In this document: positions 1 through 54,554 of the stretch, in pieces
How positions within the stretch are numbered: the first letter of the stretch is position 1
Layout: every line of letters begins with the position of its first letter
From: Monocercomonoides exilis PA203
Lineage: Eukaryota > Protista > Preaxostyla
NCBI GenBank assembly: GCA_001643675.2
Contig: LSRY02000007.1
Span: 1-64,000 of the forward strand
Direction: 5' to 3'
DNA length: 64,000 bases
The notes under the pieces: model-generated
What the model saw: only the letters and a program-made list of their open reading frames with translations
Databases searched by the model: none
What the model was told of the DNA's origin: nothing
Made by a program: the position numbers and the translations under genes

Positions 1-8
1 GTATTGCT
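1..8 (+). other. Probable Oxford Nanopore ligation-adapter remnant (GTATTGCT)
   Basis: GTATTGCT matches the 3' end of the ONT adapter (...TTACGTATTGCT) and precedes the telomere. This implies nanopore-derived sequence, so homopolymer lengths are unreliable. Confidence 0.75.
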
Positions 9-3000
9 AACCCTAACCCTAACCCTAACCCTAACCCTAACCCTAACCCTAACCCTAACCCTAACCCTAACCCTAACCCTAACCCTAACCCTAACCCTAA
101 CCCTAACCCTAACCCCTAACCCAACCCTAACCCTAACCCTAACCCTAACCCTAACCCTAACCCTAACCCTAACCCTAACCCTAACCCTAACCCTAACCCC
201 TAACCCTAACCCTAACCCTAACCCTAACCCTAACCCTAACCTAACCCTAACCCTAACCCTAACCCTAACCCTAACCCTAACCCTAACCCTAACCCTAACC
301 CTAACCCTAACCCTAACCCTAACCCTAACCCTAACCCTAACCCTAACCCTAACCCTAACCCTAACCCTAACCCTAACCCTAACCCTAACCCTAACCCTAA
401 CCCTAACCCTAACCCTAACCCTAACCCTAACCCTAACCTAACCCTAACCCTAACCCTAACCCTAACCCTAACCCTAACCCTAACCCTAACCCTAACCCTA
501 ACCCTAACCCTAACCCTAACCCTAACCCTAACCCTAACCCTAACCCTAACCCTAACCCTAACCCTAACCCTAACCCTAACCTAACCCTAACCCTAACCCT
601 AACCCTAACCCTAACCCTAACCCTAACCCTAACCCTAACCTAACCCTAACCCTAACCCTAACCCTAACCCTAACCCTAACCCTAACCTAACCCTAACCCT
701 AACCCTAACCCTAACCCTAACCCTAACCCTAACCCTAACCTAACCCTAACCCTAACCCTAACCTAACCCTAACCTAACCCTAACCCTAACCCTAACCCTA
801 ACCCTAACCCTAACCCTAACCCTAACCCCTAACCCTAACCCTAACCCTAACCCTAACCCTAACCCTAACCCTAACCCTAACCCTAACCCTAACCCTAACC
901 CTAACCCTAACCCTAACCCTAACCCTAACCCCTAACCCTAACCCTAACCCTAACCCTAACCCTAACCCTAACCCTAACCCTAACCCTAACCCTAACCCTA
1001 ACCCTAACCCTAACCCTAACCCTAACCCTAACCCTAACCCTAACCCTAACCCTAACCCTAACCCTAACCCTAACCCTAACCCTAACCCTAACCCTAACCC
1101 TAACCTAACCCTAACCCTAACCCTAACCCTAACCCTAACCCCTAACCCTAACCCTAACCCTAACCCTAACCCTAACCCTAACCCTAACCCTAACCCTAAC
1201 CCTAACCCTAACCCTAACCCTAACCCTAACCCTAACCCCTAACCCTAACCCTAACCCTAACCCTAACCCTAACCCTAACCCTAACCCTAACCCTAACCCT
1301 AACCCTAACCCTAACCCTAACCCTAACCCTAACCCTAACCCTAACCCTAACCCTAACCCTAACCCTAACCCTAACCCTAACCTAACCCTAACCCTAACCC
1401 TAACCCTAACCCTAACCCTAACCTAACCCTAACCCTAACCCTAACCCTAACCCTAACCCTAACCCTAACCTAACCCTAACCCTAACCCTAACCCTAACCC
1501 TAACCCTAACCCTAACCCTAACCCTAACCTAACCCTAACCCTAACCCTAACCCTAACCCTAACCCTAACCCTAACCTAACCCTAACCCTAACCCTAACCT
1601 AGTTTGAACCCTAACCCTAACCCTAACCCTAACCTAACCTAACCCTAACCCTAACCCTAACCCTAACCTAACCCTAACCCTAACCCTAACCCTAACCCTA
1701 ACCCTAACCCTAACCCTAACCCTAACCCTAACCCTAACCCTAACCCTAACCCTAACCCTAACCCTAACCCTAACCCTAACCCTAACCCTAACCCTAACCC
1801 TAACCCTAACCCTAACCCTAACCCTAACCCTAACCCTAACCCTAACCCTAACCCTAACCCTAACCCTAACCCTAACCCTAACCCTAACCCTAACCCTAAC
1901 CCTAACCCTAACCCTAACCCTAACCCTAACCCTAACCCTAACCCTAACCCTAACCCTAACCCTAACCCTAACCCTAACCCTAACCCTAACCCTAACCCTA
2001 ACCCTAACCCTAACCCTAACCCTAACCTAACCCTAACCTAACCCTAACCCTAACCCTAACCCTAACCCTAACCCTAACCCTAACCCTAACCCTAACCTAA
2101 CCCTAACCCTAACCTAACCCTAACCCTAACCTAACCCTAACCCTAACCCTAACCCTAACCCTAACCCTAACCCCCTAACCCTAACCCTAACCCTAACCCT
2201 AACCCTAACCCTAACCCTAACCCTAACCCTAACCCTAACCCTAACCCTAACCCTAACCCTAACCCTAACCCTAACCCTAACCCTAACCCTAACCCTAACC
2301 CTAACCCTAACCCTAACCCTAACCCTAACCCTAACCCTAACCCTAACCCTAACCCTAACCCTAACCCTAACCCTAACCCTAACCCTAACCCTAACCCTAA
2401 CCTAACCCTAACCCTAACCCTAACCCTAACCCTAACCCTAACCCTAACCCTAACCCTAACCCTAACCCTAACCCTAACCCTAACCTAACCCTAACCCTAA
2501 CCCTAACCCTAACCCTAACCCCTAACCCTAACCCTAACCCTAACCCTAACCCTAACCCTAACCCTAACCCTAACCCTAACCCTAACCTAACCTAACCCTA
2601 ACCCTAACCCTAACCCTAACCCTAACCCCTAACCCTAACCCTAACCCTAACCCTAACCCTAACCTAGTTTGAACCCTAACCCTAACCCTAACCCTAACCC
2701 CTAACCCTAACCCTAACCCTAACCCTAACCCTAACCCTAACCCTAACCCTAACCCTAACCCTAACCCTAACCCTAACCTAAACCCTAACCCTAACCCTAA
2801 CCCTAACCCTAACCCTAACCCTAACCCTAACCTAACCCTAACCCTAACCCTAACCCTAACCCTAACCCTAACCCTAACCCTAACCCTAACCCTAACCCTA
2901 ACCCTAACCCTAACCCTAACCCTAACCCTAACCCTAACCTAACCCTAACCCTAACCCTAACCCTAACCTAACCCTAACCTAACCCTAACCTAACCTAACC

Positions 3001-3023
3001 TAACCTAACCTAACCTAACCTAA
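9..3023 (-). repeat. Telomere, (TTAGGG)n on minus strand / (CCCTAA)n on plus, about 500 repeats
   Basis: Continuous CCCTAA array from the window start, with scattered CCTAA/CCCCTAA variants and two AGTTTG interruptions. Confidence 0.99.
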
Positions 3024-6000
3024 TTCATTAAAAATCAAAGGTTATTCTAACATTATAACAGATATATACAGTGGGAGTGTGAGTGGGGATGGGGGGTGTG
3101 GGGGTGGTGTGGGGGTTGTCAGATGAAATGCCCAGGGGCCAGGAACGAATTTATGAAAATTTGATTTTTGTGGGTTAGGCCAGACAGAAGGGTCTGTTTT
3201 GCAGGGGGATATGCCTGTGAAAAGGCAGGAAATGAGGTTTTAGAAGGCGTCCGCTCCGCGTCCGCCTTCTACGAAGGCCACATACTGCTCATAGGGGGCC
3301 CCCCATGAAACTCGGGGGTAAGGCAAATTTTTTGCCATAAAATTAACTCAAAAAATGACTGAAAAATGACTAAAAAATTCAAATATTTCCCTGAGTTTCT
3401 ATAAGATGACCATAAAAACTACACCAACAATCATCAGGTTCAGCACGGTCTAACCCGAACCTACAATCATATTTCTCATTGTCCTCAATCATTTTTAAAA
3501 AATTTATTTTTGACTTCTTTTTTGACTGATATTTCACTGAAAATCAAATATTTTCATAAGTCATGATAGAAAAGTTGTTAGATAATTTTGTAATAAATTA
3601 TTATTTATAAGTGCCTTTCATTGAAGGTTAGATTTCAACTGCCTTTAACCCTAACCATCACTTAACAACAATAATTTTGAATTAATTTCTGATTTTAATG
3701 GGTTAAATGTCAATATAATTAATTAAATAAATAAAATAAACATGAGAAATTGTTGGAGTCAGTTAAGATAGACTAATGGGAGATCAACATTTTGTCACAT
3801 GGTCGACCTAACACTAACTGTTAATACTATATTTTATAAAAAATAAATTTATTAAAAAAAAGAATATTTTTGGGTTAGAATGACAACAATAATATTCAAT
3901 TAATTAATTTTCAATTTTTTCATTTTTTCTCCAATATTATATTATTACACATAATTCACAACTAACACACTGGCAAAATATCTCCCTCCAAATCAGTCAT
4001 TCCAGTGAGATATAAAATATTTATTGTTTTTCTTCACTCAGAAAAATGACAAGAAAAATTCATTAAAAATCAAAGGTTATTCTAACATTATAACAGATAT
4101 ATACAGTGGGAGTGTGAGTGGGGATGGGGGTGTGGGGGTGGTGTGGGGGTTGTCAGATGAAATGCCCAGGGGCCAGGAACGAATTTATGAAAATTTGATT
4201 TTTGTGGGTTAGGCCAGACAGAAGGGTCTGTTTTGCAGGGGGATATGCCTGTGAAAAGGCAGGAAATGAGGTTTTAGAAGGCGTCCGCTCGCGTCCGCCT
4301 TCTACGAAGGCCACATACTGCTCATAGGGGGCCCCCCATGAAACTCGGGGTAAGGCAAATTTTTGCCATAAAATTAACTCAAAAATGACTGAAAAATGAC
4401 TAAAAAATTCAAATATTTCCCTGAGTTTCTATAAGATGACCATAAAAACTACACCAACAATCATCAGGTTCAGCACGGTCTAACCCGAACCTACAATCAT
4501 ATTTCTCATTGTCCTCAATCATTTTTAAAAAATTTATTTTTGACTTCTTTTTTGACTGATATTTCACTGAAAATCAAATATTTTCATAAGTCATGATAGA
4601 AAAGTTGTTAGATAATTTTGTAATAAATTATTATTTATAAGTGCCTTTCATTGAAGGTTAGATTTCAACTGCCTTTAACCCTAACCATCACTTAACAACA
4701 ATAATTTTGAATTAATTTCTGATTTTAATGGGTTAAATGTCAATATAATTAATTAAATAAATAAAATAAACATGAGAAATTGTTGGAGTCAGTTAAGATA
4801 GACTAATGGGAGATCAACATTTTGTCACATGGTCGACCTAACACTAACTGTTAATACTATATTTTATAAAAAATAAATTTATTAAAAAAAAAGAATATTT
4901 TTGGGTTAGAATGACAACAATAATATTCAATTAATTAATTTTCAATTTTTTCATTTTTTCTCCAATATTATATTATTACACATAATTCACAACTAACACA
5001 CTGGCAAAATATCTCCCTCCAAATCAGTCATTCCAGTGAGATATAAAATATTTATTGTTTTTCTTCACTCAGAAAAATGACAAGAAAAATTCATTAAAAA
5101 TCAAAGGTTATTCTAACATTATAACAGATATATACAGTGGGAGTGTGAGTGGGGATGGGGGTGTGGGGGTGGTGTGGGGTTGTCAGATGAAATGCCCAGG
5201 GGCCAGGAACGAATTTATGAAAATTTGATTTTTGTGGGTTAGGCCAGACAGAAGGGTCTGTTTTGCAGGGGGATATGCCTGTGAAAAGGCAGGAAATGAG
5301 GTTTTAGAAGGCGTCCGCTCCGCGTCCGCCTTCTACGAAGGCCACATACTGCTCATAGGGGGCCCCCATGAAACTCGGGGGTAAGGCAAATTTTTGCCAT
5401 AAAATTAACTCAAAAATGACTGAAAAATGACTAAAAAATTCAAATATTTCCCTGAGTTTCTATAAGATGACCATAAAAACTACACCAACAATCATCAGGT
5501 TCAGCACGGTCTAACCCGAACCTACAATCATATTTCTCATTGTCCTCAATCATTTTTAAAAATTTATTTTTGACTTCTTTTTGACTGATATTTCACTGAA
5601 AATCAAATATTTTCATAAGTCATGATAGAAAAGTTGTTAGATAATTTTGTAATAAATTATTATTTATAAGTGCCTTTCATTGAAGGTTAGATTTCAACTG
5701 CCTTTAACCCTAACCATCACTTAACAACAATAATTTTGAATTAATTTCTGATTTTAATGGGTTAAATGTCAATATAATTAATTAAATAAATAAAATAAAC
5801 ATGAGAAATTGTTGGAGTCAGTTAAGATAGACTAATGGGAGATCAACATTTTGTCACATGGTCGACCTAACACTAACTGTTAATACTATATTTTATAAAA
5901 AATAAATTTATTAAAAAAAAGAATATTTTTGGGTTAGAATGACAACAATAATATTCAATTAATTAATTTTCAATTTTTTCATTTTTTCTCCAATATTATA

Positions 6001-9000
6001 TTATTACACATAATTCACAACTAACACACTGGCAAAATATCTCCCTCCAAATCAGTCATTCCAGTGAGATATAAAATATTTATTGTTTTTCTTCACTCAG
6101 AAAAATGACAAGAAAAATTCATTAAAAATCAAAGGTTATTCTAACATTATAACAGATATATACAGTGGGAGTGTGAGTGGGGATGGGGGGTGTGGGGGTG
6201 GTGTGGGGGTTGTCAGATGAAATGCCCAGGGGCCAGGAACGAATTTATGAAAATTTGATTTTTGTGGGTTAGGCCAGACAGAAGGGTCTGTTTTGCAGGG
6301 GGATATGCCTGTGAAAAGGCAGGAAATGAGGTTTTAGAAGGCGTCCGCTCCGCGTCCGCCTTCTACGAAGGCCACATACTGCTCATAGGGGGCCCCCCAT
6401 GAAACTCGGGGGTAAGGCAAATTTTTTGCCATAAAATTAACTCAAAAAATGACTGAAAAATGACTAAAAAATTCAAATATTTCCCTGAGTTTCTATAAGA
6501 TGACCATAAAAACTACACCAACAATCATCAGGTTCAGCACGGTCTAACCCGAACCTACAATCATATTTCTCATTGTCCTCAATCATTTTTAAAAAATTTA
6601 TTTTTGACTTCTTTTTTGACTGATATTTCACTGAAAATCAAATATTTTCATAAGTCATGATAGAAAAGTTGTTAGATAATTTTGTAATAAATTATTATTT
6701 ATAAGTGCCTTTCATTGAAGGTTAGATTTCAACTGCCTTTAACCCTAACCATCACTTAACAACAATAATTTTGAATTAATTTCTGATTTTAATGGGTTAA
6801 ATGTCAATATAATTAATTAAATAAATAAAATAAACATGAGAAATTGTTGGAGTCAGTTAAGATAGACTAATGGGAGATCAACATTTTGTCACATGGTCGA
6901 CCTAACACTAACTGTTAATACTATATTTTATAAAAAATAAATTTATTAAAAAAAAGAATATTTTTGGGTTAGAATGACAACAATAATATTCAATTAATTA
7001 ATTTTCAATTTTTTCATTTTTTCTCCAATATTATATTATTACACATAATTCACAACTAACACACTGGCAAAATATCTCCCTCCAAATCAGTCATTCCAGT
7101 GAGATATAAAATATTTATTGTTTTTCTTCACTCAGAAAAATGACAAGAAAAATTCATTAAAAATCAAAGGTTATTCTAACATTATAACAGATATATACAG
7201 TGGGAGTGTGAGTGGGGATGGGGGGTGTGGGGGTGGTGTGGGGGTTGTCAGATGAAATGCCCAGGGGCCAGGAACGAATTTATGAAAATTTGATTTTTGT
7301 GGGTTAGGCCAGACAGAAGGGTCTGTTTTGCAGGGGGATATGCCTGTGAAAAGGCAGGAAATGAGGTTTTAGAAGGCGTCCGCTCCGCGTCCGCCTTCTA
7401 CGAAGGCCACATACTGCTCATAGGGGGCCCCCCATGAAACTCGGGGGTAAGGCAAATTTTTTGCCATAAAATTAACTCAAAAAATGACTGAAAAATGACT
7501 AAAAAATTCAAATATTTCCCTGAGTTTCTATAAGATGACCATAAAAACTACACCAACAATCATCAGGTTCAGCACGGTCTAACCCGAACCTACAATCATA
7601 TTTCTCATTGTCCTCAATCATTTTTAAAAAATTTATTTTTGACTTCTTTTTTGACTGATATTTCACTGAAAATCAAATATTTTCATAAGTCATGATAGAA
7701 AAGTTGTTAGATAATTTTGTAATAAATTATTATTTATAAGTGCCTTTCATTGAAGGTTAGATTTCAACTGCCTTTAACCCTAACCATCACTTAACAACAA
7801 TAATTTTGAATTAATTTCTGATTTTAATGGGTTAAATGTCAATATAATTAATTAAATAAATAAAATAAACATGAGAAATTGTTGGAGTCAGTTAAGATAG
7901 ACTAATGGGAGATCAACATTTTGTCACATGGTCGACCTAACACTAACTGTTAATACTATATTTTATAAAAAATAAATTTATTAAAAAAAAGAATATTTTT
8001 GGGTTAGAATGACAACAATAATATTCAATTAATTAATTTTCAATTTTTTCATTTTTTCTCCAATATTATATTATTACACATAATTCACAACTAACACACT
8101 GGCAAAATATCTCCCTCCAAATCAGTCATTCCAGTGAGATATAAAATATTTATTGTTTTTCTTCACTCAGAAAAATGACAAGAAAAATTCATTAAAAATC
8201 AAAGGTTATTCTAACATTATAACAGATATATACAGTGGGAGTGTGAGTGGGGATGGGGGTGTGGGGGTGGTGTGGGGTTGTCAGATGAAATGCCCAGGGG
8301 CCAGGAACGAATTTATGAAAATTTGATTTTTGTGGGTTAGGCCAGACAGAAGGGTCTGTTTTGCAGGGGGATATGCCTGTGAAAAGGCAGGAAATGAGGT
8401 TTTAGAAGGCGTCCGCTCCGCGTCCGCCTTCTACGAAGGCCACATACTGCTCATAGGGGGCCCCCATGAAACTCGGGGTAAGGCAAATTTTTGCCATAAA
8501 ATTAACTCAAAAATGACTGAAAAATGACTAAAAAATTCAAATATTTCCCTGAGTTTCTATAAGATGACCATAAAAACTACACCAACAATCATCAGGTTCA
8601 GCACGGTCTAACCCGAACCTACAATCATATTTCTCATTGTCCTCAATCATTTTTAAAAAATTTATTTTTGACTTCTTTTTTGACTGATATTTCACTGAAA
8701 ATCAAATATTTTCATAAGTCATGATAGAAAAGTTGTTAGATAATTTTGTAATAAATTATTATTTATAAGTGCCTTTCATTGAAGGTTAGATTTCAACTGC
8801 CTTTAACCCTAACCATCACTTAACAACAATAATTTTGAATTAATTTCTGATTTTAATGGGTTAAATGTCAATATAATTAATTAAATAAATAAAATAAACA
8901 TGAGAAATTGTTGGAGTCAGTTAAGATAGACTAATGGGAGATCAACATTTTGTCACATGGTCGACCTAACACTAACTGTTAATACTATATTTTATAAAAA

Positions 9001-10886
9001 ATAAATTTATTAAAAAAAAAGAATATTTTTGGGTTAGAATGACAACAATAATATTCAATTAATTAATTTTCAATTTTTTCATTTTTTCTCCAATATTATA
9101 TTATTACACATAATTCACAACTAACACACTGGCAAAATATCTCCCTCCAAATCAGTCATTCCAGTGAGATATAAAATATTTATTGTTTTTCTTCACTCAG
9201 AAAAATGACAAGAAAAATTCATTAAAAATCAAAGGTTATTCTAACATTATAACAGATATATACAGTGGGAGTGTGAGTGGGGATGGGGGGTGTGGGGGTG
9301 GTGTGGGGGTTGTCAGATGAAATGCCCAGGGGCCAGGAACGAATTTATGAAAATTTGATTTTTGTGGGTTAGGCCAGACAGAAGGGTCTGTTTTGCAGGG
9401 GGATATGCCTGTGAAAAGGCAGGAAATGAGGTTTTAGAAGGCGTCCGCTCCGCGTCCGCCTTCTACGAAGGCCACATACTGCTCATAGGGGGCCCCCCAT
9501 GAAACTCGGGGTAAGGCAAATTTTTGCCATAAAATTAACTCAAAAATGACTGAAAAATGACTAAAAAATTCAAATATTTCCCTGAGTTTCTATAAGATGA
9601 CCATAAAAACTACACCAACAATCATCAGGTTCAGCACGGTCTAACCCGAACCTACAATCATATTTCTCATTGTCCTCAATCATTTTTAAAAAATTTATTT
9701 TTGACTTCTTTTTGACTGATATTTCACTGAAAATCAAATATTTTCATAAGTCATGATAGAAAAGTTGTTAGATAATTTTGTAATAAATTATTATTTATAA
9801 GTGCCTTTCATTGAAGGTTAGATTTCAACTGCCTTTAACCCTAACCATCACTTAACAACAATAATTTTGAATTAATTTCTGATTTTAATGGGTTAAATGT
9901 CAATATAATTAATTAAATAAATAAAATAAACATGAGAAATTGTTGGAGTCAGTTAAGATAGACTAATGGGAGATCAACATTTTGTCACATGGTCGACCTA
10001 ACACTAACTGTTAATACTATATTTTATAAAAAATAAATTTATTAAAAAAAAGAATATTTTTGGGTTAGAATGACAACAATAATATTCAATTAATTAATTT
10101 TCAATTTTTTCATTTTTTCTCCAATATTATATTATTACACATAATTCACAACTAACACACTGGCAAAATATCTCCCTCCAAATCAGTCATTCCAGTGAGA
10201 TATAAAATATTTATTGTTTTTCTTCACTCAGAAAAATGACAAGAAAAATTCATTAAAAATCAAAGGTTATTCTAACATTATAACAGATATATACAGTGGG
10301 AGTGTGAGTGGGGATGGGGGGTGTGGGGGTGGTGTGGGGGTTGTCAGATGAAATGCCCAGGGGCCAGGAACGAATTTATGAAAATTTGATTTTTGTGGGT
10401 TAGGCCAGACAGAAGGGTCTGTTTTGCAGGGGGATATGCCTGTGAAAAGGCAGGAAATGAGGTTTTAGAAGGCGTCCGCTCCGCGTCCGCCTTCTACGAA
10501 GGCCACATACTGCTCATAGGGGGCCCCCCATGAAACTCGGGGGTAAGGCAAATTTTTTGCCATAAAATTAACTCAAAAAATGACTGAAAAATGACTAAAA
10601 AATTCAAATATTTCCCTGAGCTTCTATAAGATGACCATAAAAACTACACCAACAATCATCAGGTTCAGCACGGTCTAACCCGAACCTACAATCATATTTC
10701 TCATTGTCCTCAATCATTTTTAAAAAATTTATTTTTGACTTCTTTTTTGACTGATATTTCACTGAAAATCAAATATTTTCATAAGTCATGATAGAAAAGT
10801 TGTTAGATAATTTTGTAATAAATTATTATTTATAAGTGCCTTTCATTGAAGGTTAGATTTCAACTGCCTTTAACCCTAACCCTAAC
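3022..10886 (+). repeat. Subtelomeric head-to-tail tandem array, ~1.03-kb unit, about 7.6 copies, non-coding
   Basis: AATTCATTAAAAATCAAAGG recurs at 3022, 4057, 5088, 6116, 7151, 8186, 9216 and 10247. TAACCCTAACC recurs at 3646, 4676, 5705, 6740, 7775, 8804, 9836 and 10871. Copies differ almost only in homopolymer length, and no ORF is conserved across copies. Confidence 0.98.
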
Positions 10887-10907
10887 ATCGGTTTTTGCAC
10901 GACTTTT

Positions 10908-11320
10908 TGTGACTATATCCGATTGTGATTATATGCGATGTGTCTTTACACAGAAAAAAATAAAAATTAATTTTTGAAATAATTAATTTTGGGTCAATTT
11001 TTTTATTTTTGAAAAAACTTGACAAATACACATTTTTCAATAGAAATAACAATTTTTATTGTTTTATTATGTTATTCAGACTTTTTTAAACATTATTTTG
11101 AAAAATCGATTTTTTGAAATTTTTTATCAAAAAATATATTTTTAATTGAAATTATCACAAATAATGAAAACAATTATGATTTCATATTTTCAGCCCTGTG
11201 ACTATATGTGATGGATATTGAATGAAAAATTGGGAAAAATTGTTTGTGCATGGATAAATGTGACTATAAACGAATGTGATTGTATTCGACGTGATTATAT
11301 CCGGTTTTGACTGTTAACAA
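10908..11320 (+). repeat. Cluster of degenerate ~16-bp motifs, consensus TGTGAYTATATNCGAT
   Basis: TGTGACTATATCCGAT-TGTGATTATATGCGAT from 10908; TGTGACTATATGTGAT at 11197; TGTGACTATAAACGAA-TGTGATTGTATTCGAC-GTGATTATATCCGGT from 11259. Confidence 0.7.
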
Positions 11321-12450
11321 ATCGACATAAATAAGCAACATAAAAAGGATTATATGAAAATATTCACCATGACAAACATTAAAAACTATATTTTATCTTG
11401 TTCGATTGAATTGATAAATTCATTCGAACTATGTCAAGCAAGAAATAGATATCTCTATAAAATATGAACAAAATAAAAAATTATGGGTGCTGAAATTTTT
11501 GAATTTCAGAGAGAAATGTTTTTGTCTAATTTCGAATTTTCCCTCCTTGAATCGCTTAGTTAAATTGTGAAGATTAACGCCATTTTATTCAAATTTTGAA
11601 AAAGTCCAAACTGAAAGTGATACAATTTACACCTATGCCAAATTCTTTTCGAAAAATCGGTCCATATAAAGTTTAAAAATAATTATTATCTATTAATTCG
11701 TTATGAATTGAGCGTTTAAAAACCCAAATTGCAAAAGGAGCGCATTTCGAATTATGCCTTAAAACCGTGAGAAAAATGAAGTCACAGTTTTAAAAAATTT
11801 TTTAAATTCAAATGAATTGCGCTTCCTGTTCGTTTGAATGTGTTCACACGTGCAATGTTATCCATCCATCAAGTGTCTTCAGATTTTCTTTTCATTAACT
11901 GAGTTTGTTTCTTGTTGAAAAACAGTAATAATTTTGAAATAAAGAAACACGCATTCATTCACAAACCACTTTTGTATAAGTTAAAATTGAAGTCGATTTT
12001 ATTCAATATGATATTTATTATGTTTTCATTTCGATTGTGTTATGGAGAAATTTGGATGAAACTTATTTGAAAACAAAACTTATAATGGGGTTGTGTCGGT
12101 TTATTCAAAATGTTGTTGACTTCATAAAAATACGTTAAATGAAATTACCAATGAATAAATCGAGAATTTGAAGGAAAGAAATAAAAATGAGCATTATACA
12201 AAAACTTTTAATTTATCGAGACTATTTTTATGATCCCATAAAAAATCACCCATATTAGTTTTTTCTTCGATTTGAAATTTATTGCATAAGATAGGTTTGC
12301 TTTGAATAGTTATTTCATATTATTTCTTATTCATTCGTTGATAAAGAAATGTTATTCTTTGAAAAGACATTTCAAACTATTTCACTGATCAATTTCAAAG
12401 TTATATAAACATTGATCAAAATAGTGTTTTGTTGAAGAGTGCTTTAAAGA

Positions 12451-17129: not shown

Positions 17130-20100
17130 TCAATGATGGGCTGATGCAGTATGCTCCGCAATTAACCTTAAAAGAAATCCATATCTGTCAATATATGTAT
17201 ATTAAAAATCACATGAATTATAAAATTTCAAATTGATTATAATTTCGCTTATTTAAGATTTGATAAAAATCTTTTCAAACCTTGCTAAAGATAATGTTAG
17301 AGGCCTTCCTCGCTTTAGTCCAATGTCTTGTTCTCCGTTTTTATCCAGATAAAGTTCAAACCTACAAACATTATTTCAAAAAATCAAAATTGAAAAAGAT
17401 GAATATTGATAATCAAATATAAATATATGAAATACAAATATTGAAAAAAAGTGTTTTTTAAAGATGGAAATAAAAAAGCTCATACAATGGCAGTATTGTT
17501 ACGTAATGTAATGTGCCAATGATCGCGCAAAGATATCCAGATGCTAATGTTAGAATAATTCCTGAGCATGAAGAAGAATGAGCCACCTCTTCTGAAGAAA
17601 GAGATGTATTCCTAATTGTAAATAATAGATTTTTCTTGTTATTTGAATCCAAATTCAACTTTCGTTGATCATTGTTCTGAGAAAATAAATCATTAACTTG
17701 ATAATTTTCATTCACAACACATTGACAGCACTTACTGCAGCTGCACATCAACTTTCCACAGAGCATGCAAATGCTCATCAGCCCGCATAACTTACCACAA
17801 CAAGTACAATGGCATTGCTGCCCAAAAGAAATCAAACGAAGCAAAGATAACGGGAGTGAAACTAAACGTGGTAAAAGTAGATTTTGCGGTAAAAGATTAG
17901 GCCTGGTTAAGTGCAATGAATGCTCGGAATTGCAATGTTCTGTCAGTGGAATTTTTCTATCAAGTTTTCTTTTTGCAGATAACAAATCCTCTTTTCCATT
18001 GAACGATTCAGTTTGATAAACATAATCTCCTTGTAAATTATCCCTTGACAAATGACATCGCTTTCGTCGCATGTTGCAGCCATTACAAAGAAAAGATGAG
18101 AAAAATATGAGTAACTGCTGATCTGAAGGTGAAGAATAAACTGTCATCGCATCCAAATCTGATACATATAAAGATGTGACAAAATCGACCTGCCTGTTTA
18201 AAGAATGTACAGATGTTAGTTGCTCAGATGATGCTGAGGAGGAAGAAGTCGTTGAAGGATGAGGCAAAGAAGAAATAGAGGACGAGGGAGAAAAAGACGG
18301 AAAAGAAGTCATCAAAGATGAATTACACGATGAAGCAACAGAAGATTTTGAATGAACATTTTGGATATCAGGAGAATACAAAGGGGTTTTCATCAGCTTT
18401 TCAAATATGTTAAATGTCTCATCAAATGCAACAATGGAATCAGCCAATAGTTTTTCCTGTTCTAAGGGTTGAGCTGAAGAATCTTCTTCATCTTTCCGCA
18501 TTGCACAATCTAATTGATGACTTTCTGAGATAAATGATTCGGCTTGCTTCAGGCAAGAACTCCACTTATCTTCATTCTGTATTCCAAACAAAGCAGTAAA
18601 CAAAAGAGATGCACGACGGAGAAATATGTGACGTTGAATGCTTGCATTGCGAGGATCAAACCAGGGAGAAAGCAAAAAAGGTGAATGTGGATGGTGAACC
18701 ATCCAGACAAGCAGTTCATGTGTCAGTTCTTTTTCATTGTTGAGTTCATTCAAACTTATATCACTTGAGCTGCTTTCTTTCAAATGAACAGAATTCTCCA
18801 AATCCACTGATTCAGCACCTGCAGTCTCGTCCGTAGTTGTTTTTGATTTCGATTCAATAGAAGTGCAATAAAAAGGAAGGCAATTCAAAACATGTTGAAG
18901 ACATGTCACAAATTTGTATGGAGACAATGAATAAAGCTTCCAACTTGATTTATATTTGCGTTCACCTTGTTGAGAGGTTTTCTCATTTCCGTCAACAATT
19001 TCGCGAATCAAAAGCATCACAAGCAATGTTAAAGGATCGCTACCAACAAACGAACAGAGTTCTTTTGCTACAAATCCTGGTTTGTCTGACTTCAACAATC
19101 GCAACTTTGGCTCTTCACTTTCTGATTCGTAGTTTTGTTTCTGTTCAATTAACAATCTGTTCACCTCCATCCATGTCAATCCATTATGACGCCACATTAA
19201 AACCTTCTTCACAGCACTTTTAGCATTGGTCATTATCACAATCTCTGAGTCAATGCGTTTTTTGATCAGCTCCCATGTGGAAGATGAAATAGGATCACTT
19301 AGCAATTTTGTTTTGATGTTCTCTATTTGCGAATCTTTTGGTAATAATTCCTTCTTTGGTTGTTCTAAGACGTCTTTACTTACTGAATCAGGAAAAATTA
19401 TGTAGTTTGTAAGCATATCTGAGTAGCTAGGAGATGAATGAGATAAGTATGAGTCTGCATTCATATGGATAATAGCTTCGACTATCTGTTTGTTGTCCAA
19501 GCAGTCGCAAAGAACCCATAGTTTCTTTATATCCAATGGCTGGGTATGCTTTTGAGATGCAGCAAAAACAACAGCTGAGTCAAAAAGAGAAGCAATTGTT
19601 TGTTTCTGAGGAGGTGTGAGGTGAAACTGATGAGTGCACATTGGAGGAACAAAACACTCCTCCGAATCCCAAATAAAAGAAGAAAGAGCTTTTTCCTGAT
19701 GTTGGAATATTTCAGAGGATTTCAATTCGGAAAAATCTGCATCTTCATTATTAGTCTGTTGAAACCCTTGTTCCGCATTTGGAAACGTTTCATTAGCAAA
19801 ACTCTGGCATTGATTGCGTTGCAATTTGTTTCTTTTGCGTCTGCGACTTTGGAATGTTGAGTCCCAAACTTCTTGTCCAGGTAAAGGAAGAGGCCGAAGT
19901 CCGAATTCAATTGATGCCAATGTTGATACTAATGATTCAAGAATAGGATTAGAAACAGCATCTCTATTTGGCTGAATTGGATTTGGAATATTGTTTACAG
20001 AAGAATGCATAGAATTGAAATCAATAGCATCCGAAGTAATTGGATCTGTTGCAGTTAGCGATAAAGATGAAGATGATGATGAAGCCGATGCATAACTTCG

Positions 20101-23100
20101 CTGCAAATCACTCGATGTTTCTTTGCATTCATCTGTACTCATCTTCTCTTTCTCTTCCTGTTCTTCCTTTATTGATGCAGCTTCAATTGTATTTGCTTTT
20201 ATTGAATTGATTAATTCTTTTCTTCTCTTTTGCGCAGAAGCAATTTCATCCAAAAGCCAATGCTTCCAAATGCGAATGAAATAAATCATTTCGTCCAATG
20301 AAATAAACAAATCATAACTCAGGCAACTTTCCATAAATGCTATCCTTTTTCGCCTTTCTCTAATTATTTCTTTTTCTTTTTCTTCCCATTTCTCGATCAA
20401 ATCAAACGTTACCTGAAAATGCAATTCATTTTTTTCATTATTGTTTTGCTTCTCATTTTCTGTATCAGTCTGAGTTTGTTGTTTGGGATATAAATGAGAT
20501 AAATTGGAATTAGTTGTGTTTGTTAAGTTTTTCTCATTCTCTTCTGTCTTTTTTTCTTTTTCTTTTTCCGTTGATTCTTTTAATTCATCTGATTTTCCTT
20601 CAGAGCTCAGCTCGTTTTTGGAATTATTTTGAAACTTCATCTTCTCTGCAAAATAATTGGAATATTCCTGTTCTGTGCATAAATTTAATTCCTTAACGCT
20701 ACTTTTATTCAACTGAAATTCGGAAATTTTCTCGACAATAAGCATTGAGAGCCAGTAAAAAAAGAATTTTGCAGACTCCACGCCACAGGTTGTCATCATC
20801 TCTATTGTAGATGGGGGAGCAATACATCTTTCAATAAAGTTTTCTGGTTGAGGGAGTTTTAACACTGAAGCTTGTGCTTCTTGCGGATTTTCATGTTGTT
20901 GCATAGATAATACTTTCCTTTTTAGTAATTCGGTAATAAGCAAATCACTTTCCAGTATTTCAGGTAGTTCATCCGGCATCTTCTTATTCAAAAAACTGCT
21001 GAGACAAATGTGCTTTTTTTTCATGTCGAAAATTGTTGCAGTTTTCAAAATGTGGCAAAGTTTCAAGGCATAAGTGCAGTAAAATGATAGCTCATTAAGC
21101 ATCGATGCTCTTATCAGCGGATTTTGGAGCGAGTGAATCGGAATATCTGAAAGTGAAGTGAAAGACGAATAGAAGCAATTGCTTGGAATGTTAATTCGCA
21201 AACGATGGTTAGCCAAAAGTGAGCTTTGCGTTGGATGATCTTTTATGGGATGATCAATTTGCTCGATTGCTTCTTCTATTGTCTTCGCTTGTTGGCATTC
21301 CAAGTTTTCTGCTTTGCAAGTTTGTCGTAAACGCAGATTACGTTGTTGCTTGAGTTCTTCTATTCTTCTAATGATTGAATATTTTTTATTTTGTTTCTCA
21401 CTTTCTTGTGTTGCTCCATCAGAGAAATTCCATTCTTTTCTCTCTTCGGTTTCTTCACTCCTGTAGCCAATCTGAGTAGATTCCTGATCCAAACCGGAAA
21501 GCAAAGGAATAAATGTATTCCCAACGCAGTGACAAAGCGGACAATGGAACTGGTTTAACTGGGTAATAAGTCCCTCCGCTTCTTTTTGTTTCCCTCCCTC
21601 TCTCAAAATATGTGCGGCTAAGCAACGAAAATGAATCACATGTGTGCATGTCTGTGTAAAAAATGTGCATGAGACAATCGAAGGAGGAGAAGGTTCTGGC
21701 AAATAGCTAAGAATTTTATGGATGTTCCTCGAATAACTTGTCTGAAGGCTATTTGACAATGATTTGGATGTTTGAAACCTCTTATTAGGGGACATCTTTG
21801 AAAAGACCTGTTTATCGATATTTCCGAAGAGCCAACTTTTATCTTCAGTCTGTCTAGCATAAATCAATTTTGTCAAATGATTAAGCGGAATATTCAAAAT
21901 GGGATTCCACGTATACTCCTCCTCGTTGTATGACCATATCCGGATTAACTTTAATAAATTAAACAACTTCAAATAATTCATATTCGATAGAGAGAAATCT
22001 TGTGCTTCTTTCTTTGATTCTGTTGCTATTGTTGAAGCTTCATTTTCTGAAGAAAAATCGTATGTTGAGTAAACAGGAAGGAAAGGAAATGCACATTCTA
22101 ATATTGGTGACAGATCGGTGGAGGTGTATCGTATGTCCTCAATAACTAAGTCATCTCGCCCGCTGTTTCCCCACAAATCTGTCTTTGTCCCGAGGGCAAT
22201 TTGGTTCCATAAGGATACTTTCTCCTCTTGCAACGCTTGAGAATCCAAAAGAGAATGGAAAGAAGTCGAGAAAGAAGCAGAAGTTTGATTAGATAGTTTC
22301 TGAGATGATTGGCTCGATTCATCGCTGTTGAGCTCATATGACTGTTGTCCACATTCATCGCATCCAGACGTGTCCATCGCCAAATTCCATTCGTTCAGTT
22401 CTCTTCCCCACTTCTCCAATTTGAATAAATATTTCTCTATTTCGTTTCTTTTCGACAGCCTACGCATTTTCAGAGGTCCCTCAGGTGCACGGAACAAAGG
22501 CACACGTCTGTGATTTGCTATAAATGATGAATAGTTTTCTCGAGAAGAAGCAGATGAAAGCGGCTTTGATTGGTTTGGATTCTTTTCATCGTTTTCAGAA
22601 TTGTCAGTGAAGGGAAAATCAGAAGTTGTGGAGCTATCTGAATCTGGTGCATGCAATAAGCAATTAGAAGACGATGACTCTGTCGATTGTTCCTCTTTGA
22701 GCGCATCCTGTTCTTTCTCAACGTGTAATGAAAGCTTCATCGCAATATTTGTTGAAAGTGATTCGATTTTTTGCTCGTTATATATTTTCTTTTCGGCTTC
22801 GTTAACTTCATCTTCCTCGTCTTCGTCTTGTTTCTTCCAGAATAATGCTTTTTCGTATTTTTCTTCATCTTTTTCTGCTTTTCTGGACTCTTTTTCCCAG
22901 TCCCTTTTCTTTTTCGTTTTTTCTTTTTCTTGTATGTGCTTATCTTTTGCTTTTTTCTTTATTAAAAATTTTACCTTATTTTTCTTCATCTTCTTCTTCA
23001 TTTTATCCAGCATTTTGAAGTAACTCGATGCCCATTTGACGAATCGCTCCTCCTTCTTCACCGTCTGTATTCGATGCCTCTGTTCAGTAAACTTCGCTAA

Positions 23101-26100
23101 TTCATTCACAACGGCCTGTTTGTTTGTTCCAAAGAAGTGCTTCTCGAAGCCAGCAGGGGTATTCAATCCTTTCATGTTATTGCCAATCAGCTCAGAGGAA
23201 TCGTCACCAAATTTGGATGTTTCCTTTGGGAAATGGAAAAGTGGCAATGCTGTCAAATGCATCGTCTTTGAGGGCTCAAGTTCCTTGCTGGCATCGAGCA
23301 GGCTGTCTTCGTTTGCTCCTTTCTCTCTGAATGGCATCAGCATAAAAGAGAAAGGGACATCTTTAGTGGTGCTTGAAGAATATAATGGACCGTGGGTCAA
23401 ATCCAAAGAATCCGTATCTTTTTCTCTGATTGGCTGTTCCATTGTATCTTTTACTGAACAATCTGATTGAAGGACAGCTTGTTTCTTATGAATTCCTTTT
23501 TCCATTGCATTTTCTGCTGTTTTTACTCTTTCTATTTCATCCAGAAAATCTCCGTCTTCCCAAAAATGTTCTCTTTTAGCAAAGTTCCATCGATGACATC
23601 TTGTCAATACTTTTCCTTTGTGTTTGTGTTTTTTCCTCCTTTTTTCATCTTTCTTCTCTCTCCTTTCTTTCTCCATCGCCTTCCTCTTCCTTTCTTCCTC
23701 ATCGCGCAAATGATACACAGCCGACGAGTTCAGCGCCTGAAGCGTCGAGTCATACGACAAATGGCCAATGTATCCAGCACTTTCTCCTTTCAATATGGCA
23801 CCGTGGCAATACATGCACACCTCGCTTGTTTCTTCCTCTGCCTCCATTTTTTCCAGCTGGTTTTCAAGTTCAGCTATTTCTGCGTCGATTGCGCTTATCT
23901 GCTGCTTTTTCAGTTCTTCTTTTTTCTTTTCGCTTTCCACTGAATCAACTTCGATTTCGCATTGATTTGTTTTTGAGTCATTTGATTGTGCAACGCTTTC
24001 TTTCGTATCTTCCTTGTTGTCTTCCTTGTTTGAATTCTCTTTCTTTTCCACAACATTGTCAGATTTGTTTTCTTCATTTTCTTTTCCATCTTCTTCCATC
24101 ATGCCAAACGCCTTCATTGCCATCTGTTGTTTTCTTTTCAACTCTTCCATAATTCTTTTTCTTGCTAGTAATGCTTTCTTTTTATTTGCCTTTTTCTCCT
24201 TTTCTTCAAAATCTTCTTCATTTCCTTCTTTGTTTGTTACTTCTTCAATTGCCATCTTCTTTAACTGCTCACTTTTTCTTATCTCTTCCAGCTCTTTCTC
24301 TTTTGCAGAGCGCGAATTGTAAACTCTAATACCAATCTGTTGAAGCATCGTCCTTCTCTTCAATGGATCGTTGGCAGTGAATAGCCAGGTGAGAAGGCGC
24401 AGACGATGGAGAATGCGCGAAAGAAGAGGAAGGACTAATTTTGATGTAAATAAAAGAGTCGAAGATGAAGAAGACGACGAAGCAGAAGAAGAAGCAGAAG
24501 AAGCAGAAGCAGAAGGAGGTGATAAGATGGAAGCAGAGTTTAAAGATGGATCGGAAACATTCAAAGAAGCAGTGCTTTGTGTTGTTGAATCTTTTGCAAT
24601 ATCAGGTGAGAATCTTTCATCTGCTTTTGTATGTTTTTCCTCTTCAACTGAATCTGTGTCTTTACAAAACTCTTCCCATTTTGAGTCGATTAGATTCGAA
24701 AATGGCAATTTCAGAGGATTCGATTCTGAATGAGCAGAAGAAAGAAGAGCAAATAGAAGAGATGCTATGCTATATTTGCAGTCCGAGCATTCAGACGAAT
24801 CGTCTTTGTGAGACGAAGCATTCGCTGGTGACTGTGATAGCGATGGAAACGGAGAGCACGTGCAAGAAAGAGGGAAAAAGAGTATTTCCAAGAAAGAAAG
24901 AGAAGAAGGAACAGAAGGAAAAGCCAAAGGATGCTTTGAATCATTCAGCAGTTGTGGCTGCTGGAAGATAAGATGAGAATTTGTTTTAGAAGAAGAAGAA
25001 CTTTGCTTTTCATCAATAGAAATGTCACTTTTTTGAATGTCGCATATTTCCTGCACGCGCCAAGCAGCGCTGAAGCAGATGGTTACGTCGAGCAGTCTAA
25101 GCGCTGGAATGAGCAATCCTTCATTTGAGGGTGTCTCTCCAAAAGACGGAAGATGGACGGAAGAGCTGTCTGACGCTATCTTCTGCTGGACTGATGAAGG
25201 ATGGAGCGAATAGTGCAAAATCGTCCATATCATCCCAAGCACAGCACGTGAACAGCAAACGTCGAGAAGATGCGAAAGCGACGGATGAGGCAGACGAACA
25301 TGCGGCAGTCCAGGAAGAGGAGGAAGGAGAGAAGGAAGAAAGTGCTTTGGAATAGAGCTAAATATCGGATGTGACGAGGAGCATGCATTCTCAGCGTGTT
25401 GAATGTAATCCTCTTCAAACAGCTCTTCGCCTTTGTACAAGCAAATGCTCCACTTCTTTCTTCTTTCTTCTTTGGCCTGTGCATCATCTTCCTTTTCATC
25501 TGGCTTTGTGTTCCAGCTGCAATAAGACGACGTTAACGTGTTCTCCAGTTTTTGTGTGTAATTCGTTCTGGCAGTCAAACGGCAACAGTTCGAAAAGGGA
25601 TCAGCAAGCAGAATCTTCAGTGGCGCCAGAGAAAGGCATTCTTTTGCAGAGCTGTGGGATGAATAAGCACTTCCTGCAGAGTTTGATGAAGAACCAGGCA
25701 GAAGAGAACGCAGAACCTGCGCAGATGAATTGATGGTGTTCAAAGAAACAGCAGATCTGCCTCTGTTTCTATTGGACTCTTCTGAACTGTTACACAAGTC
25801 TGCGATGATAGGCTCAAAAGACGGGTGCTGTGTAAAGCGAGGATTAAGCAACGAGCACATGCTGGAATACGACCTGGACTTTTCAGAAATCATATAAGAA
25901 GAAAGAGAAGCAACAAAAGAAGGTGTGAATGGGATGACGACAGGCTGATTGGTTGATGTGTGGAAAGAGGGGCATGATGACACAACCTTTCGCGAATTTG
26001 GATTGAGTCGAGGGAAACGGTTGGGGTATTCGATGAATGGAGAAGATAAGTACAAAAATGTAGATTCACAATGAGACGTTGAATCTGATGAAGAATTATC

Positions 26101-41970: not shown

Positions 41971-42029
<59 letters not shown>
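41971..42029 (+). repeat. Poly(A) tract (A59) preceded by TTTTTCG
   Basis: Direct reading; lies ~200 bp upstream of the amylase ATG. Confidence 0.85.
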
Positions 42030-54211: not shown

Positions 54212-54501
54212 AATGTTTTGTATTTTCCGTTTTGTATGTTGTAAAGTCTTATTTTAAAGATTTTGAAATGTGGATGATTCAATTTTTTAAAATATGTATT
54301 GTTTAGAAAATATCGACGAGTTTTTATTTATTGCTTTATCAAGAAATCTCTTGTTATCAAAAGATTAAAAGGGCTTTTGATATTTTTAAATTATACGTTG
54401 TAAAAGTTGAAATTAAAATTGCTTTCAAAATTTTTGATCAGAGCATTTTTCTAATAAAAAGTCACTGAATTTTTAATTATCAGTTCAGAATGTCTTTTTT
54501 T

Positions 54502-54506
<5 letters not shown>

Positions 54507-54554
<48 letters not shown>
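54507..54554 (-). repeat. Poly(T) tract, reading TTTTCG + long A-run on the minus strand
   Basis: 48 T on the plus strand followed directly by CGAAAA. Confidence 0.85.

Follow-up and report, generated by a model that had tools for sequence, protein, structure and literature searches.

Head-to-tail telomeric chains that end in a truncated terminal copy are known from the MoTeR elements of Magnaporthe and from GilM/GilT of Giardia, and the non-LTR telomeric retrotransposons (HeT-A/TART, SART/TRAS, GilM/GilT and MoTeR) carry a reverse transcriptase (RT) or gag ORF and a defined 3' end, often with poly(A). The Penelope-like elements Athena and Coprina have a hammerhead ribozyme motif beside their 3' telomeric tract (PMC8557442). 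For the Y' elements of Saccharomyces cerevisiae, the proposed route of spread is invasion of internal tracts by short telomeres and outward copying by break-induced replication (PMC6410037; PMC13177704). According to PMC6410037, which cites Flint 1997 and Ambrosini 2007, the borders of human and yeast duplicons carry short or degenerate (TTAGGG)n tracts in the same direction as the telomere. The genome papers on Monocercomonoides exilis, a eukaryote without mitochondria, go no further than the telomere repeats and a count of the contigs that bear telomeres, and its subtelomeres are undescribed. Here we analysed a window of 64,000 nt, the whole stretch under study, which belongs to contig C69 of the ONT assembly (other C numbers designate other contigs of the same M. 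exilis assembly; all features given with window coordinates lie on the + strand). The subtelomeric array of this window is one copy of a genome-wide non-coding repeat that probably travels from one chromosome end to another and is re-formed by DNA-level processes.

The window starts with the terminal telomere, (CCCTAA)n in its C-rich strand (7-3020), whose repeats decay to CCTAA 5-mers in the final ~50 nt ahead of the array. A variant motif, CCTAACCTAGTTTGAA, lies within this telomere at 1593-1608 and again at 2658-2673, and has 164 exact copies in the genome compared to 0 for a control pattern. The array itself spans 3022-10886. It consists of one distal partial unit (3022-3656), which corresponds to unit positions 401-1035 and is joined directly to the telomere, followed head-to-tail by seven full, non-coding units (3657-10881; individually 3657-4686, 4687-5715, 5716-6750, 6751-7785, 7786-8814, 8815-9846 and 9847-10881), the unit count and array length being those of the ONT assembly alone. 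The seven full units measure 1029-1035 nt and differ from each other by homopolymer-length indels and by one substitution, sited in the innermost unit; truncated inner units are absent from this array. The unit lengths hinted at a higher-order repeat of four units (L S S L / L S S L), which was dropped because nearly all differences between units are homopolymer indels, without consistent i/i+4 pairing.

Every unit ends in CTGCCTT followed by the perfect 11-nt C-strand tract TAACCCTAACC (for example 6740-6750; the other tracts start at 3646, 4676, 5705, 7775, 8804 and 9836). The chance expectation from the unit base composition is 0.0015 perfect 11-nt tracts per unit. No A-run was found before the tract in the C69 units, and no further tract of this kind was found in the rest of the window (10887-64000). 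Two degenerate telomere-like tracts lie inside the unit, CCTAACACTAAC at 5866-5877 (unit positions 151-162) and CTAACCCGAACCTA at 6544-6557 (unit positions 829-842). The G+C-rich core module, which occupies 6067-6487 in the same unit (unit positions 352-772), is the portion common to all array variants and includes an invariant segment of ~70 nt, in which there is a strong hairpin.

Proximally, the array terminates on a 16-nt tract, TAACCCTAACCCTAAC (10871-10886), which we read as a telomere seed left at a healed break. The DNA that follows (10887-11314), which would be the site of this break, is a cut copy of a MITE-like dispersed repeat of ~452 bp with 28-nt terminal inverted repeats and at least 493 candidate copies in the genome. 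The first ~24 nt of this copy are missing and the telomere tract stands in their place, which argues that a break was healed here by telomerase and that the chromosome end was once capped exactly at this point. An earlier note on this DNA had described seven complete units, a telomere-capped distal unit without its first ~400 bp, one perfect 11-nt telomeric tract per unit and a longer tract ending the array at 10871-10886, all of which were borne out. By contrast, the flank that it took for unique DNA is the 5'-cut MITE-like copy. Regarding the tandem structure, for which it had pointed to raw reads, short reads of this strain from a 2016 run gave a 312-nt contig that crosses one unit-unit tract (9739-10050) with 0 differences, which upholds the joining of the units and leaves their number to the ONT assembly. 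Among the short-read pieces listed, none crosses the proximal junction. In four runs, unit words are much deeper than the flanking single-copy words, a depth that shows the multi-copy state only.

At least 20 contig ends carry members of the unit family, all of them pointing the same way with respect to the telomere. On ~20 ends, some of which were examined only around their junctions, all proximal borders of homology fall on a C-strand telomere tract. These borders lie at three to four different unit phases, namely unit 1035 (C69, C15, C24, C10 and C48), unit ~162 (C54, C20, C43/C83, C66, C67 and C56/C47/C12), unit 842 (C55 and C52) and just past unit 965 (C51), the first three of which match telomere-like tracts, perfect or degenerate, of the C69 unit. 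Between units the tract measures 11 nt without exception, the C52 array included despite its 88% identity, whereas at array-flank borders its length varies between 11 and ~100 nt. On C54, C20 and C43 the copies pass over unit position 1 to the tract and the adjoining unit, indicating that an array, rather than a unit with ends of its own, was the template; no copy terminates at that position. The distal truncation points vary (unit 401, 702, 361, 91, 217, 268, 426 and 922), and C24 carries a single short copy (unit positions 922-1035) with the 3' end kept and the 5' part gone. It should be noted that the units of C69, C54 and C20 are mutually 99.9-100% identical, that two unit variants are intermixed along the C52 array (A A A A B A B') and that the arrays of C18 and C26 are tandem, yet without any tract. 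Telomere patches are scattered through one unit copy on C70, perhaps as a consensus artefact. Buried tract relics occur 23-52 kb inside contigs.

These data extend to at least 20 ends the polarity, the head-to-tail chain, the telomere-capped distal truncation and the proximal telomere seed that the earlier note had described. The single orientation on chromosome ends and the variable distal truncation points (eight, between unit 91 and 922) that it had asked about were likewise found on these ends. Its idea that proximal joining always takes place at a telomere tract held as to the tract, all borders being on C-strand tracts, but not as to a fixed site, since several internal phases are used besides the unit end. 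Clearly, short telomere seeds have received non-telomeric DNA on their distal side.

The same tract rule is followed by DNA other than the unit. On C52, a cut unit is followed by a 15-nt tract and then by a 9.6-kb block with a 990-aa ORF. This block is 100% identical to C1 over the ~5.2 kb searched, its distal ~250 nt match C1 too, and C1 has the same 15-nt tract at the border of the common block. Comparison of the 990-aa ORF with Pfam gave no family above threshold. Similarly, C15 and C66 have in common a terminal piece that includes the telomere junction at unit position 91, and their homology stops inside the tract. That a 9.6-kb gene block and a terminal piece with its own telomere junction both obey the tract rule points to DNA templates.

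The short telomere tracts look like the scars of healed chromosome breaks, onto which DNA of other ends was copied. The best reading of these results, and on balance a probable one, is that ends repeatedly broke, were healed by telomerase and, from telomere tracts as seeds, were extended by copying of DNA templates, in the manner of yeast Y'. The chromosome would first have broken inside the MITE at 10887, telomerase would have healed the break, and the new telomere would have shrunk to a short seed, of which 16 nt are left. The G-strand end of this seed could then have annealed to the 11-nt tract in an array of another end or of the sister chromatid, followed by outward copying through unequal exchange or through break-induced replication, the factors of which include Rad52 and Pol32. 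Out-of-register copying would have expanded the array to 7.6 near-identical units, and a later break at unit position 401, healed again, would have given rise to the present 3-kb telomere. CTAGG is found at the start of many healed junctions and is part of the variant motif recurrent within telomeres; CTAGG or TTCAAACTAGG is a candidate start of new telomeres made by telomerase.

In this scheme we infer the order of events, as well as copying by a DNA polymerase rather than by an RT; the same junctions would result from an RNA template several units long, or from internal priming on an RNA of this kind. As a seed of 11-16 nt is short for classical homologous recombination, a microhomology-driven variant must be assumed. 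Among the assembled ends, no possible donor with at least seven units identical to those of C69 was found, so that local amplification is also an assumption. The scheme presupposes a 'tract followed distally by non-telomeric DNA', the very first origin of which it does not explain.

Alternatively, a ~1-kb DNA circle with one tract, excised from an array, might have served as rolling-circle template for the short telomere. Such circle-templated extension of a short telomere is the 'roll and spread' idea of Kluyveromyces lactis. It would yield a run of identical units beginning at a tract, and the C69 array has this form, with seven full units without substitutions save one in the innermost, the same tract in each and a start exactly at a tract. 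However, out-of-register break-induced replication or unequal exchange would leave the same sequence, the interleaved variants of C52 are not expected from a single circle, and the 9.6-kb block and the junctions at other phases are left unexplained. We therefore consider a circle unlikely as the template.

A retroelement reading is disfavoured and appears distinctly improbable. Here the unit would be a non-autonomous element. Its RNA, with UAACCCUAACC at the end, would pair with the G-overhang and serve as the template from which an RT provided in trans (Penelope-like, DIRS-like or TERT) extends the chromosome end. The polarity is as expected, with a reverse-complement telomere tract at the inward end of each unit, short single copies such as that of C24 keep the 3' end and lose the 5' part, the distal truncation points are variable, and the genome has RT genes and TERT. 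Nevertheless, the unit has no coding ORF (the longest is 57 aa), and an Rfam scan of 3000-12000 on both strands, hammerheads included, gave no match at E<=1; the sole strong match in the variant arrays is an LSU rRNA fragment in the C18 variant. The last 180 nt of the unit, searched genome-wide, match unit arrays only and never adjoin an RT gene, and the RT-encoding element sharing the 3' end of the unit, suggested in the earlier note, was not found in this way. Among the best 150 of 332 candidates, the RVT_1 matches lie scattered through contig interiors and are paired, at a distance of ~2 kb, with tyrosine-recombinase matches, a DIRS-like arrangement. The structure of the junctions also argues against such an element: the inner tracts are always 11 nt, the inner units are untruncated, copies pass seamlessly over unit position 1 and none ends there, junctions lie at internal phases, arrays without tracts are tandem anyway, and the 9.6-kb gene block and the piece with the donor's telomere junction obey the identical junction rule. 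These data do not support the view of the unit as a discrete element with an RNA template and an RT as copying enzyme. A structured RNA in the G+C-rich core was considered separately on an alignment of nine variants and rejected. The ~70-nt stretch is invariant; the few two-sided changes trace back to a single replaced block and covariation contributes only -1.17 kcal/mol, so that the core is not evidence for an RNA gene.

RNA-templated synthesis beside telomerase could also take a form in which read-through transcripts of arrays or terminal blocks anneal via their telomere-like tracts to short G-overhangs and are copied by TERT or another RT. If so, the tract-punctuated subtelomere mosaic would document which templates a telomerase-like enzyme had chosen. 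We give this form little credence. Every end carries ~3 kb of canonical telomere and the genome has one TERT gene, and the second end-extension system beside telomerase put forward in the earlier note is accordingly unsupported.

Site-specific integration is very improbable. A telomere-associated tyrosine recombinase would insert circular units into telomere repeats with the tract as crossover site, and conservative recombination would indeed hold the tract at exactly 11 nt. Such a reaction would not give truncated modules, junctions at degenerate motifs or flank tracts of 11-100 nt. No recombinase gene was found within or beside the C69 array, and a tyrosine recombinase was rejected as array partner, the Phage_integrase matches seen being DIRS-like and located in contig interiors beside RT matches, not at arrays. 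Lastly, it is hardly credible that the tandem array or the short tracts are artefacts of ONT consensus and ten rounds of Pilon polishing (PMC8767320), to which the mainly ONT-typical homopolymer indels between units and perhaps the patched C70 copy could be attributed, given the independent 2016 short-read contig without differences, the depth of the unit words in four runs and the recurrence of these tracts, in unchanged positions, in diverged paralogous arrays of many contigs.

The window and the ~20 other ends provide an unusually clean record of end breakage, healing and rebuilding. Since every block border, even those of modules inside the 1-kb repeat, is a telomere scar of the same direction, these ends are a useful natural case for telomere healing and template-seeded repair. 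The principle is already known from yeast and human subtelomeres, and no new kind of system is therefore proposed.

With the endonuclease-deficient Penelope-like elements (Athena, Coprina and Terminon), the unit has in common a terminal site, uniform orientation and an inward 3' reverse-complement telomere tract (PMC8557442), whereas, in contrast to Athena/Coprina, it has no RT ORF, RT-bearing partner, hammerhead ribozyme or defined 5' end, and its unit-unit tract is invariant in length. Like HeT-A/TART of Drosophila (PMC5537684), the array is a head-to-tail chain at a chromosome end with a truncated terminal copy. HeT-A/TART, MoTeR and GilM/GilT, however, either code for a cognate RT or rely on one, their ends are defined and their inner copies are variably truncated, none of which is seen in M. 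exilis, where the ends are capped by telomerase-made telomeres of ~3 kb. The C1/C52 block and the relics buried 23-52 kb inside contigs resemble the human and yeast duplicon borders mentioned above, whereas the M. exilis tracts, unlike those of human subtelomeres, punctuate a 1-kb satellite at each unit and sub-unit module border and thus at a much finer grain. The unit differs from Y' in lacking a helicase ORF (no ORF exceeds 57 aa) and sequence homology, in its length (~1 kb against 5-7 kb), in tracts of only 11-16 nt and in a distal unit that is always cut and healed, not complete. In both systems, tandem units of one orientation, split by short internal telomere tracts, lie between flank and telomere, near-identical copies occur on several ends (C69, C54 and C20), and homology begins at an internal tract and can reach the donor's own end (C15/C66, and C1/C52 at the 15-nt tract). 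By analogy, then, the M. exilis unit is outside the Y' family and behaves like Y'.

The window, the left end of contig C69, opens with a telomere of about 3 kb, (CCCTAA)n (7-3020), followed by a head-to-tail array (3022-10886) in which a distal partial unit (3022-3656; positions 401-1035 of the unit) precedes seven complete units, each 1029-1035 nt long. Each unit ends in ..CTGCCTT-TAACCCTAACC, an 11-nt telomeric tract of which 0.0015 perfect examples per unit are expected from composition, and the final, proximal tract (10871-10886) measures 16 nt. A single substitution, located in the innermost unit, distinguishes the seven full units, the remaining differences being homopolymer-length indels of the ONT-assembly type, and the ORF check of the unit gave no ORF longer than 57 aa. 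One unit-unit tract is also crossed, with zero differences, by a 312-nt contig of short reads from an independent run on strain PA203; the number of units and the junction of the array with its flank are based on the ONT assembly (82,301,135 bases, 101 contigs; PMC8767320), which was also the genome searched. Given this layout, the tracts and the short-read support, the earlier note correctly described a chain of units each ending in a telomeric tract. Subtelomeric repeats are described neither in the ONT assembly paper (PMC8767320) nor in the 2019 genome paper, and a literature search on the genus Monocercomonoides and subtelomeres returned nothing relevant. The core of each unit carries a stretch of about 70 nt (window 6320-6390) with a strong GC hairpin, ..GGCGTCCGCTCCGCGTCCGCC.., the stretch being invariant in nine variants of the array whose other positions differ by 10-15% (alignment A3, columns ~253-325); it may act as a promoter or bind a protein. 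Elsewhere, the window contains an uninterrupted 4781-aa ORF on the minus strand (17458-31803) and pure homopolymer runs of 59 A (41971-42029) and about 60 T (54495-54554; 94% matches).

The DNA on the inward side of the array had been taken as unique, but a copy of a MITE-like dispersed repeat (about 452 bp, 28-nt terminal inverted repeats) occupies positions 10887-11314; the genome has at least 493 candidate copies, at 83-89% identity. Uncut copies start with ..ACAGTCAAAACCGGATATAATCAC-ATCGG. The window copy is cut at its left end, with the telomere tract standing in place of the first ~24 nt (alignment A2); the same missing letters appear as loose ends at 10885 in short-read contigs of other copies. 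This replacement indicates that the chromosome once ended within the MITE and received a telomerase cap at that point, with the array added later, outward of the leftover 16-nt telomere seed.

The scars show a possible telomerase signature. CTAGG precedes TTAGGG at the start of about 10 of 25 junctions between flank and telomere tract, and the longer motif TTCAAACTAGG (164 copies versus 0 for the control) lies in every case within telomeres or tracts; both observations are consistent with telomerase having written the tracts where ends had broken. An inserted telomere variant, CCTAACCTAGTTTGAA (G-strand TTCAAACTAGGTTAGG), whose CTAGG part opens many healed junctions, has 164 exact copies genome-wide versus 0 for the control; it occurs in the window telomere (1593-1608 and 2658-2673) and in those of C1, C10, C24, C26, C52 and others, with 1-8 copies per telomere where listed. 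This motif may be what telomerase writes when starting on a fresh end and, if so, would reveal the telomerase RNA sequence beside the template.

The unit family was found on contigs C69, C54, C20, C52, C55, C51, C15, C24, C10, C48, C66, C70, C26, C18 and C17, with buried relics on C43 (duplicated on C83), C22 and C67 and a unit-bearing block common to C56, C47 and C12. Copies lie on the + strand close to left ends and on the - strand close to right ends, the exception being C83, a 46-kb contig duplicating the C43 relic, where orientation is unclear. A single 9-nt stretch was the only one in opposite orientation among all tracts seen at unit-bearing ends, and the pattern DTAACCCTAACCD gave 124 matches versus 14 for the control, those listed being nearly all close to contig ends and on the appropriate strand. 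Many ends were sampled around their junctions, and all proximal borders of unit homology lie on a C-strand telomere tract, at variable phase: the canonical tract at unit position 1035 (C69, C15, C24, C10 and C48, all with different flanks), position ~162 (C54, C20, C43/C83, C66, C67 and C56/C47/C12), position 842 (C55 and C52) or another site (C51). At the first three of these phases the C69 unit itself has a telomere-like motif, namely the tract (1025-1035), CCTAACACTAAC (151-162) and CTAACCCGAACCTA (829-842). Random phases, mixed orientations and many interstitial copies, named in the earlier note as signs against its reading, were thus not seen. Distal truncation varies from end to end as anticipated (401, 702, 361, 91, ~217, 268, 426 and 922); proximal joining at telomere tracts held at every border, but the same phase was not always used. 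A mosaic of modules that each sit on a telomere scar is a better description of the unit than a two-ended element.

Two further copies should be mentioned. On C17 (1327029-1349895), 29-52 kb from the right end, a buried array repeats a 1047-bp variant 23 times, every unit having an 11-nt tract, and resembles a former chromosome end covered by later additions. At C70:222500-223300, a unit-like copy has dozens of short stretches swapped for CCCTAA-type patches, which may genuinely record repeated action of telomerase or recombination, or may be a consensus artefact produced by ONT assembly and ten rounds of Pilon.

The earlier note was right on architecture and polarity. Its mechanism, in which an RNA or circle is copied onto ends by a reverse transcriptase (RT) acting in trans, is not supported, given the constant 11-nt inner tracts, the lack of a 5' end, a gene-bearing block and the lack of retroelement hallmarks. 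The Rfam scan gave no hammerhead or other match in the array, and the genome search placed the last 180 nt of the unit in unit arrays only, never beside an RT gene, so that the proposed partner sharing this 3' end was not found. Among the best 150 of 332 candidates, RVT_1 matches are scattered in contig interiors, about 2 kb from tyrosine-recombinase matches. At many interior loci RVT_1 and Phage_integrase lie about 2 kb apart on the same strand in long open frames (for example C20:1013002 and 1015071; C2:1661124 and 1663194), a pairing by which the abundant retroelements look DIRS-like in arrangement. The genome has one TERT gene, and a long canonical telomere caps every end examined.

By contrast, several observations point to DNA as the probable template. 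Unit-unit tracts are always 11 nt, including in the C52 array (88% identity to C69), whereas those between array and flank measure anything from 11 to about 100 nt (C66, ~100; C67, ~80; C56 group, 31; C24, 21; C69, 16). This difference indicates that the inner tract is inherited as part of the repeat, separate events being recorded by the outer junctions only. Copies on C54, C20 and C43 cross unit position 1 into the tract and position 1035 of the next unit, and none of the unit copies examined ends at position 1; such read-through indicates that the template was an array. The C52 array breaks off near unit 537-564; distal to it come a 15-nt tract, a 9.6-kb block of other DNA whose 990-aa ORF points outward, and the real telomere. 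The first 5.2 kb of this block are 100% identical to C1, which carries the identical 15-nt tract right at the edge of the block and has a different proximal flank; the distal ~250 nt also match C1, which runs on where C52 was cut and healed. This gene-bearing block obeys the same junction rule as the units. C15 and C66 share an identical terminal piece (telomere, unit 91-162, tract), with the same telomere junction and unit variant, and their homology stops inside the tract. Two independent reverse-transcription stops at one base are unlikely, and a donor end copied to the tip explains the piece directly. Finally, the related arrays of C18 (period 1382) and C26 (period 1060) are tandem without a telomere tract, so the tract is not needed for array building. 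The 1382-bp unit of C18 (array at 7.5-14.9 kb) combines the G+C-rich core of the family unit (unit positions 352-772) with an antisense LSU rRNA fragment of 160 nt (Rfam RF02543 positions 2825-2984, E 2e-35; 652-813 and 2006-2193 of sequence L030).

We propose that a chromosome end would break or erode and be healed by telomerase, the new telomere then shrinking to a short seed. This seed could anneal to a telomere-like tract in the repeat of another end and prime outward DNA-templated copying, via break-induced replication or unequal exchange. Local amplification, possibly by rolling circle, would follow, before a fresh distal break and its healing.

Penelope-like elements (PMC8557442) share two positional features with the M. 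exilis unit; two of their defining features, an RT partner (best 150 of 332 RT candidates) and a hammerhead, were not found for it, which makes a Penelope-like identity unlikely. The closest analogues are the spread of yeast Y' and, in yeast and human subtelomeres, the telomere-like tracts that mark block borders (PMC6410037, PMC13177704). Without homology to Y', the M. exilis array would, by analogy, work like it.
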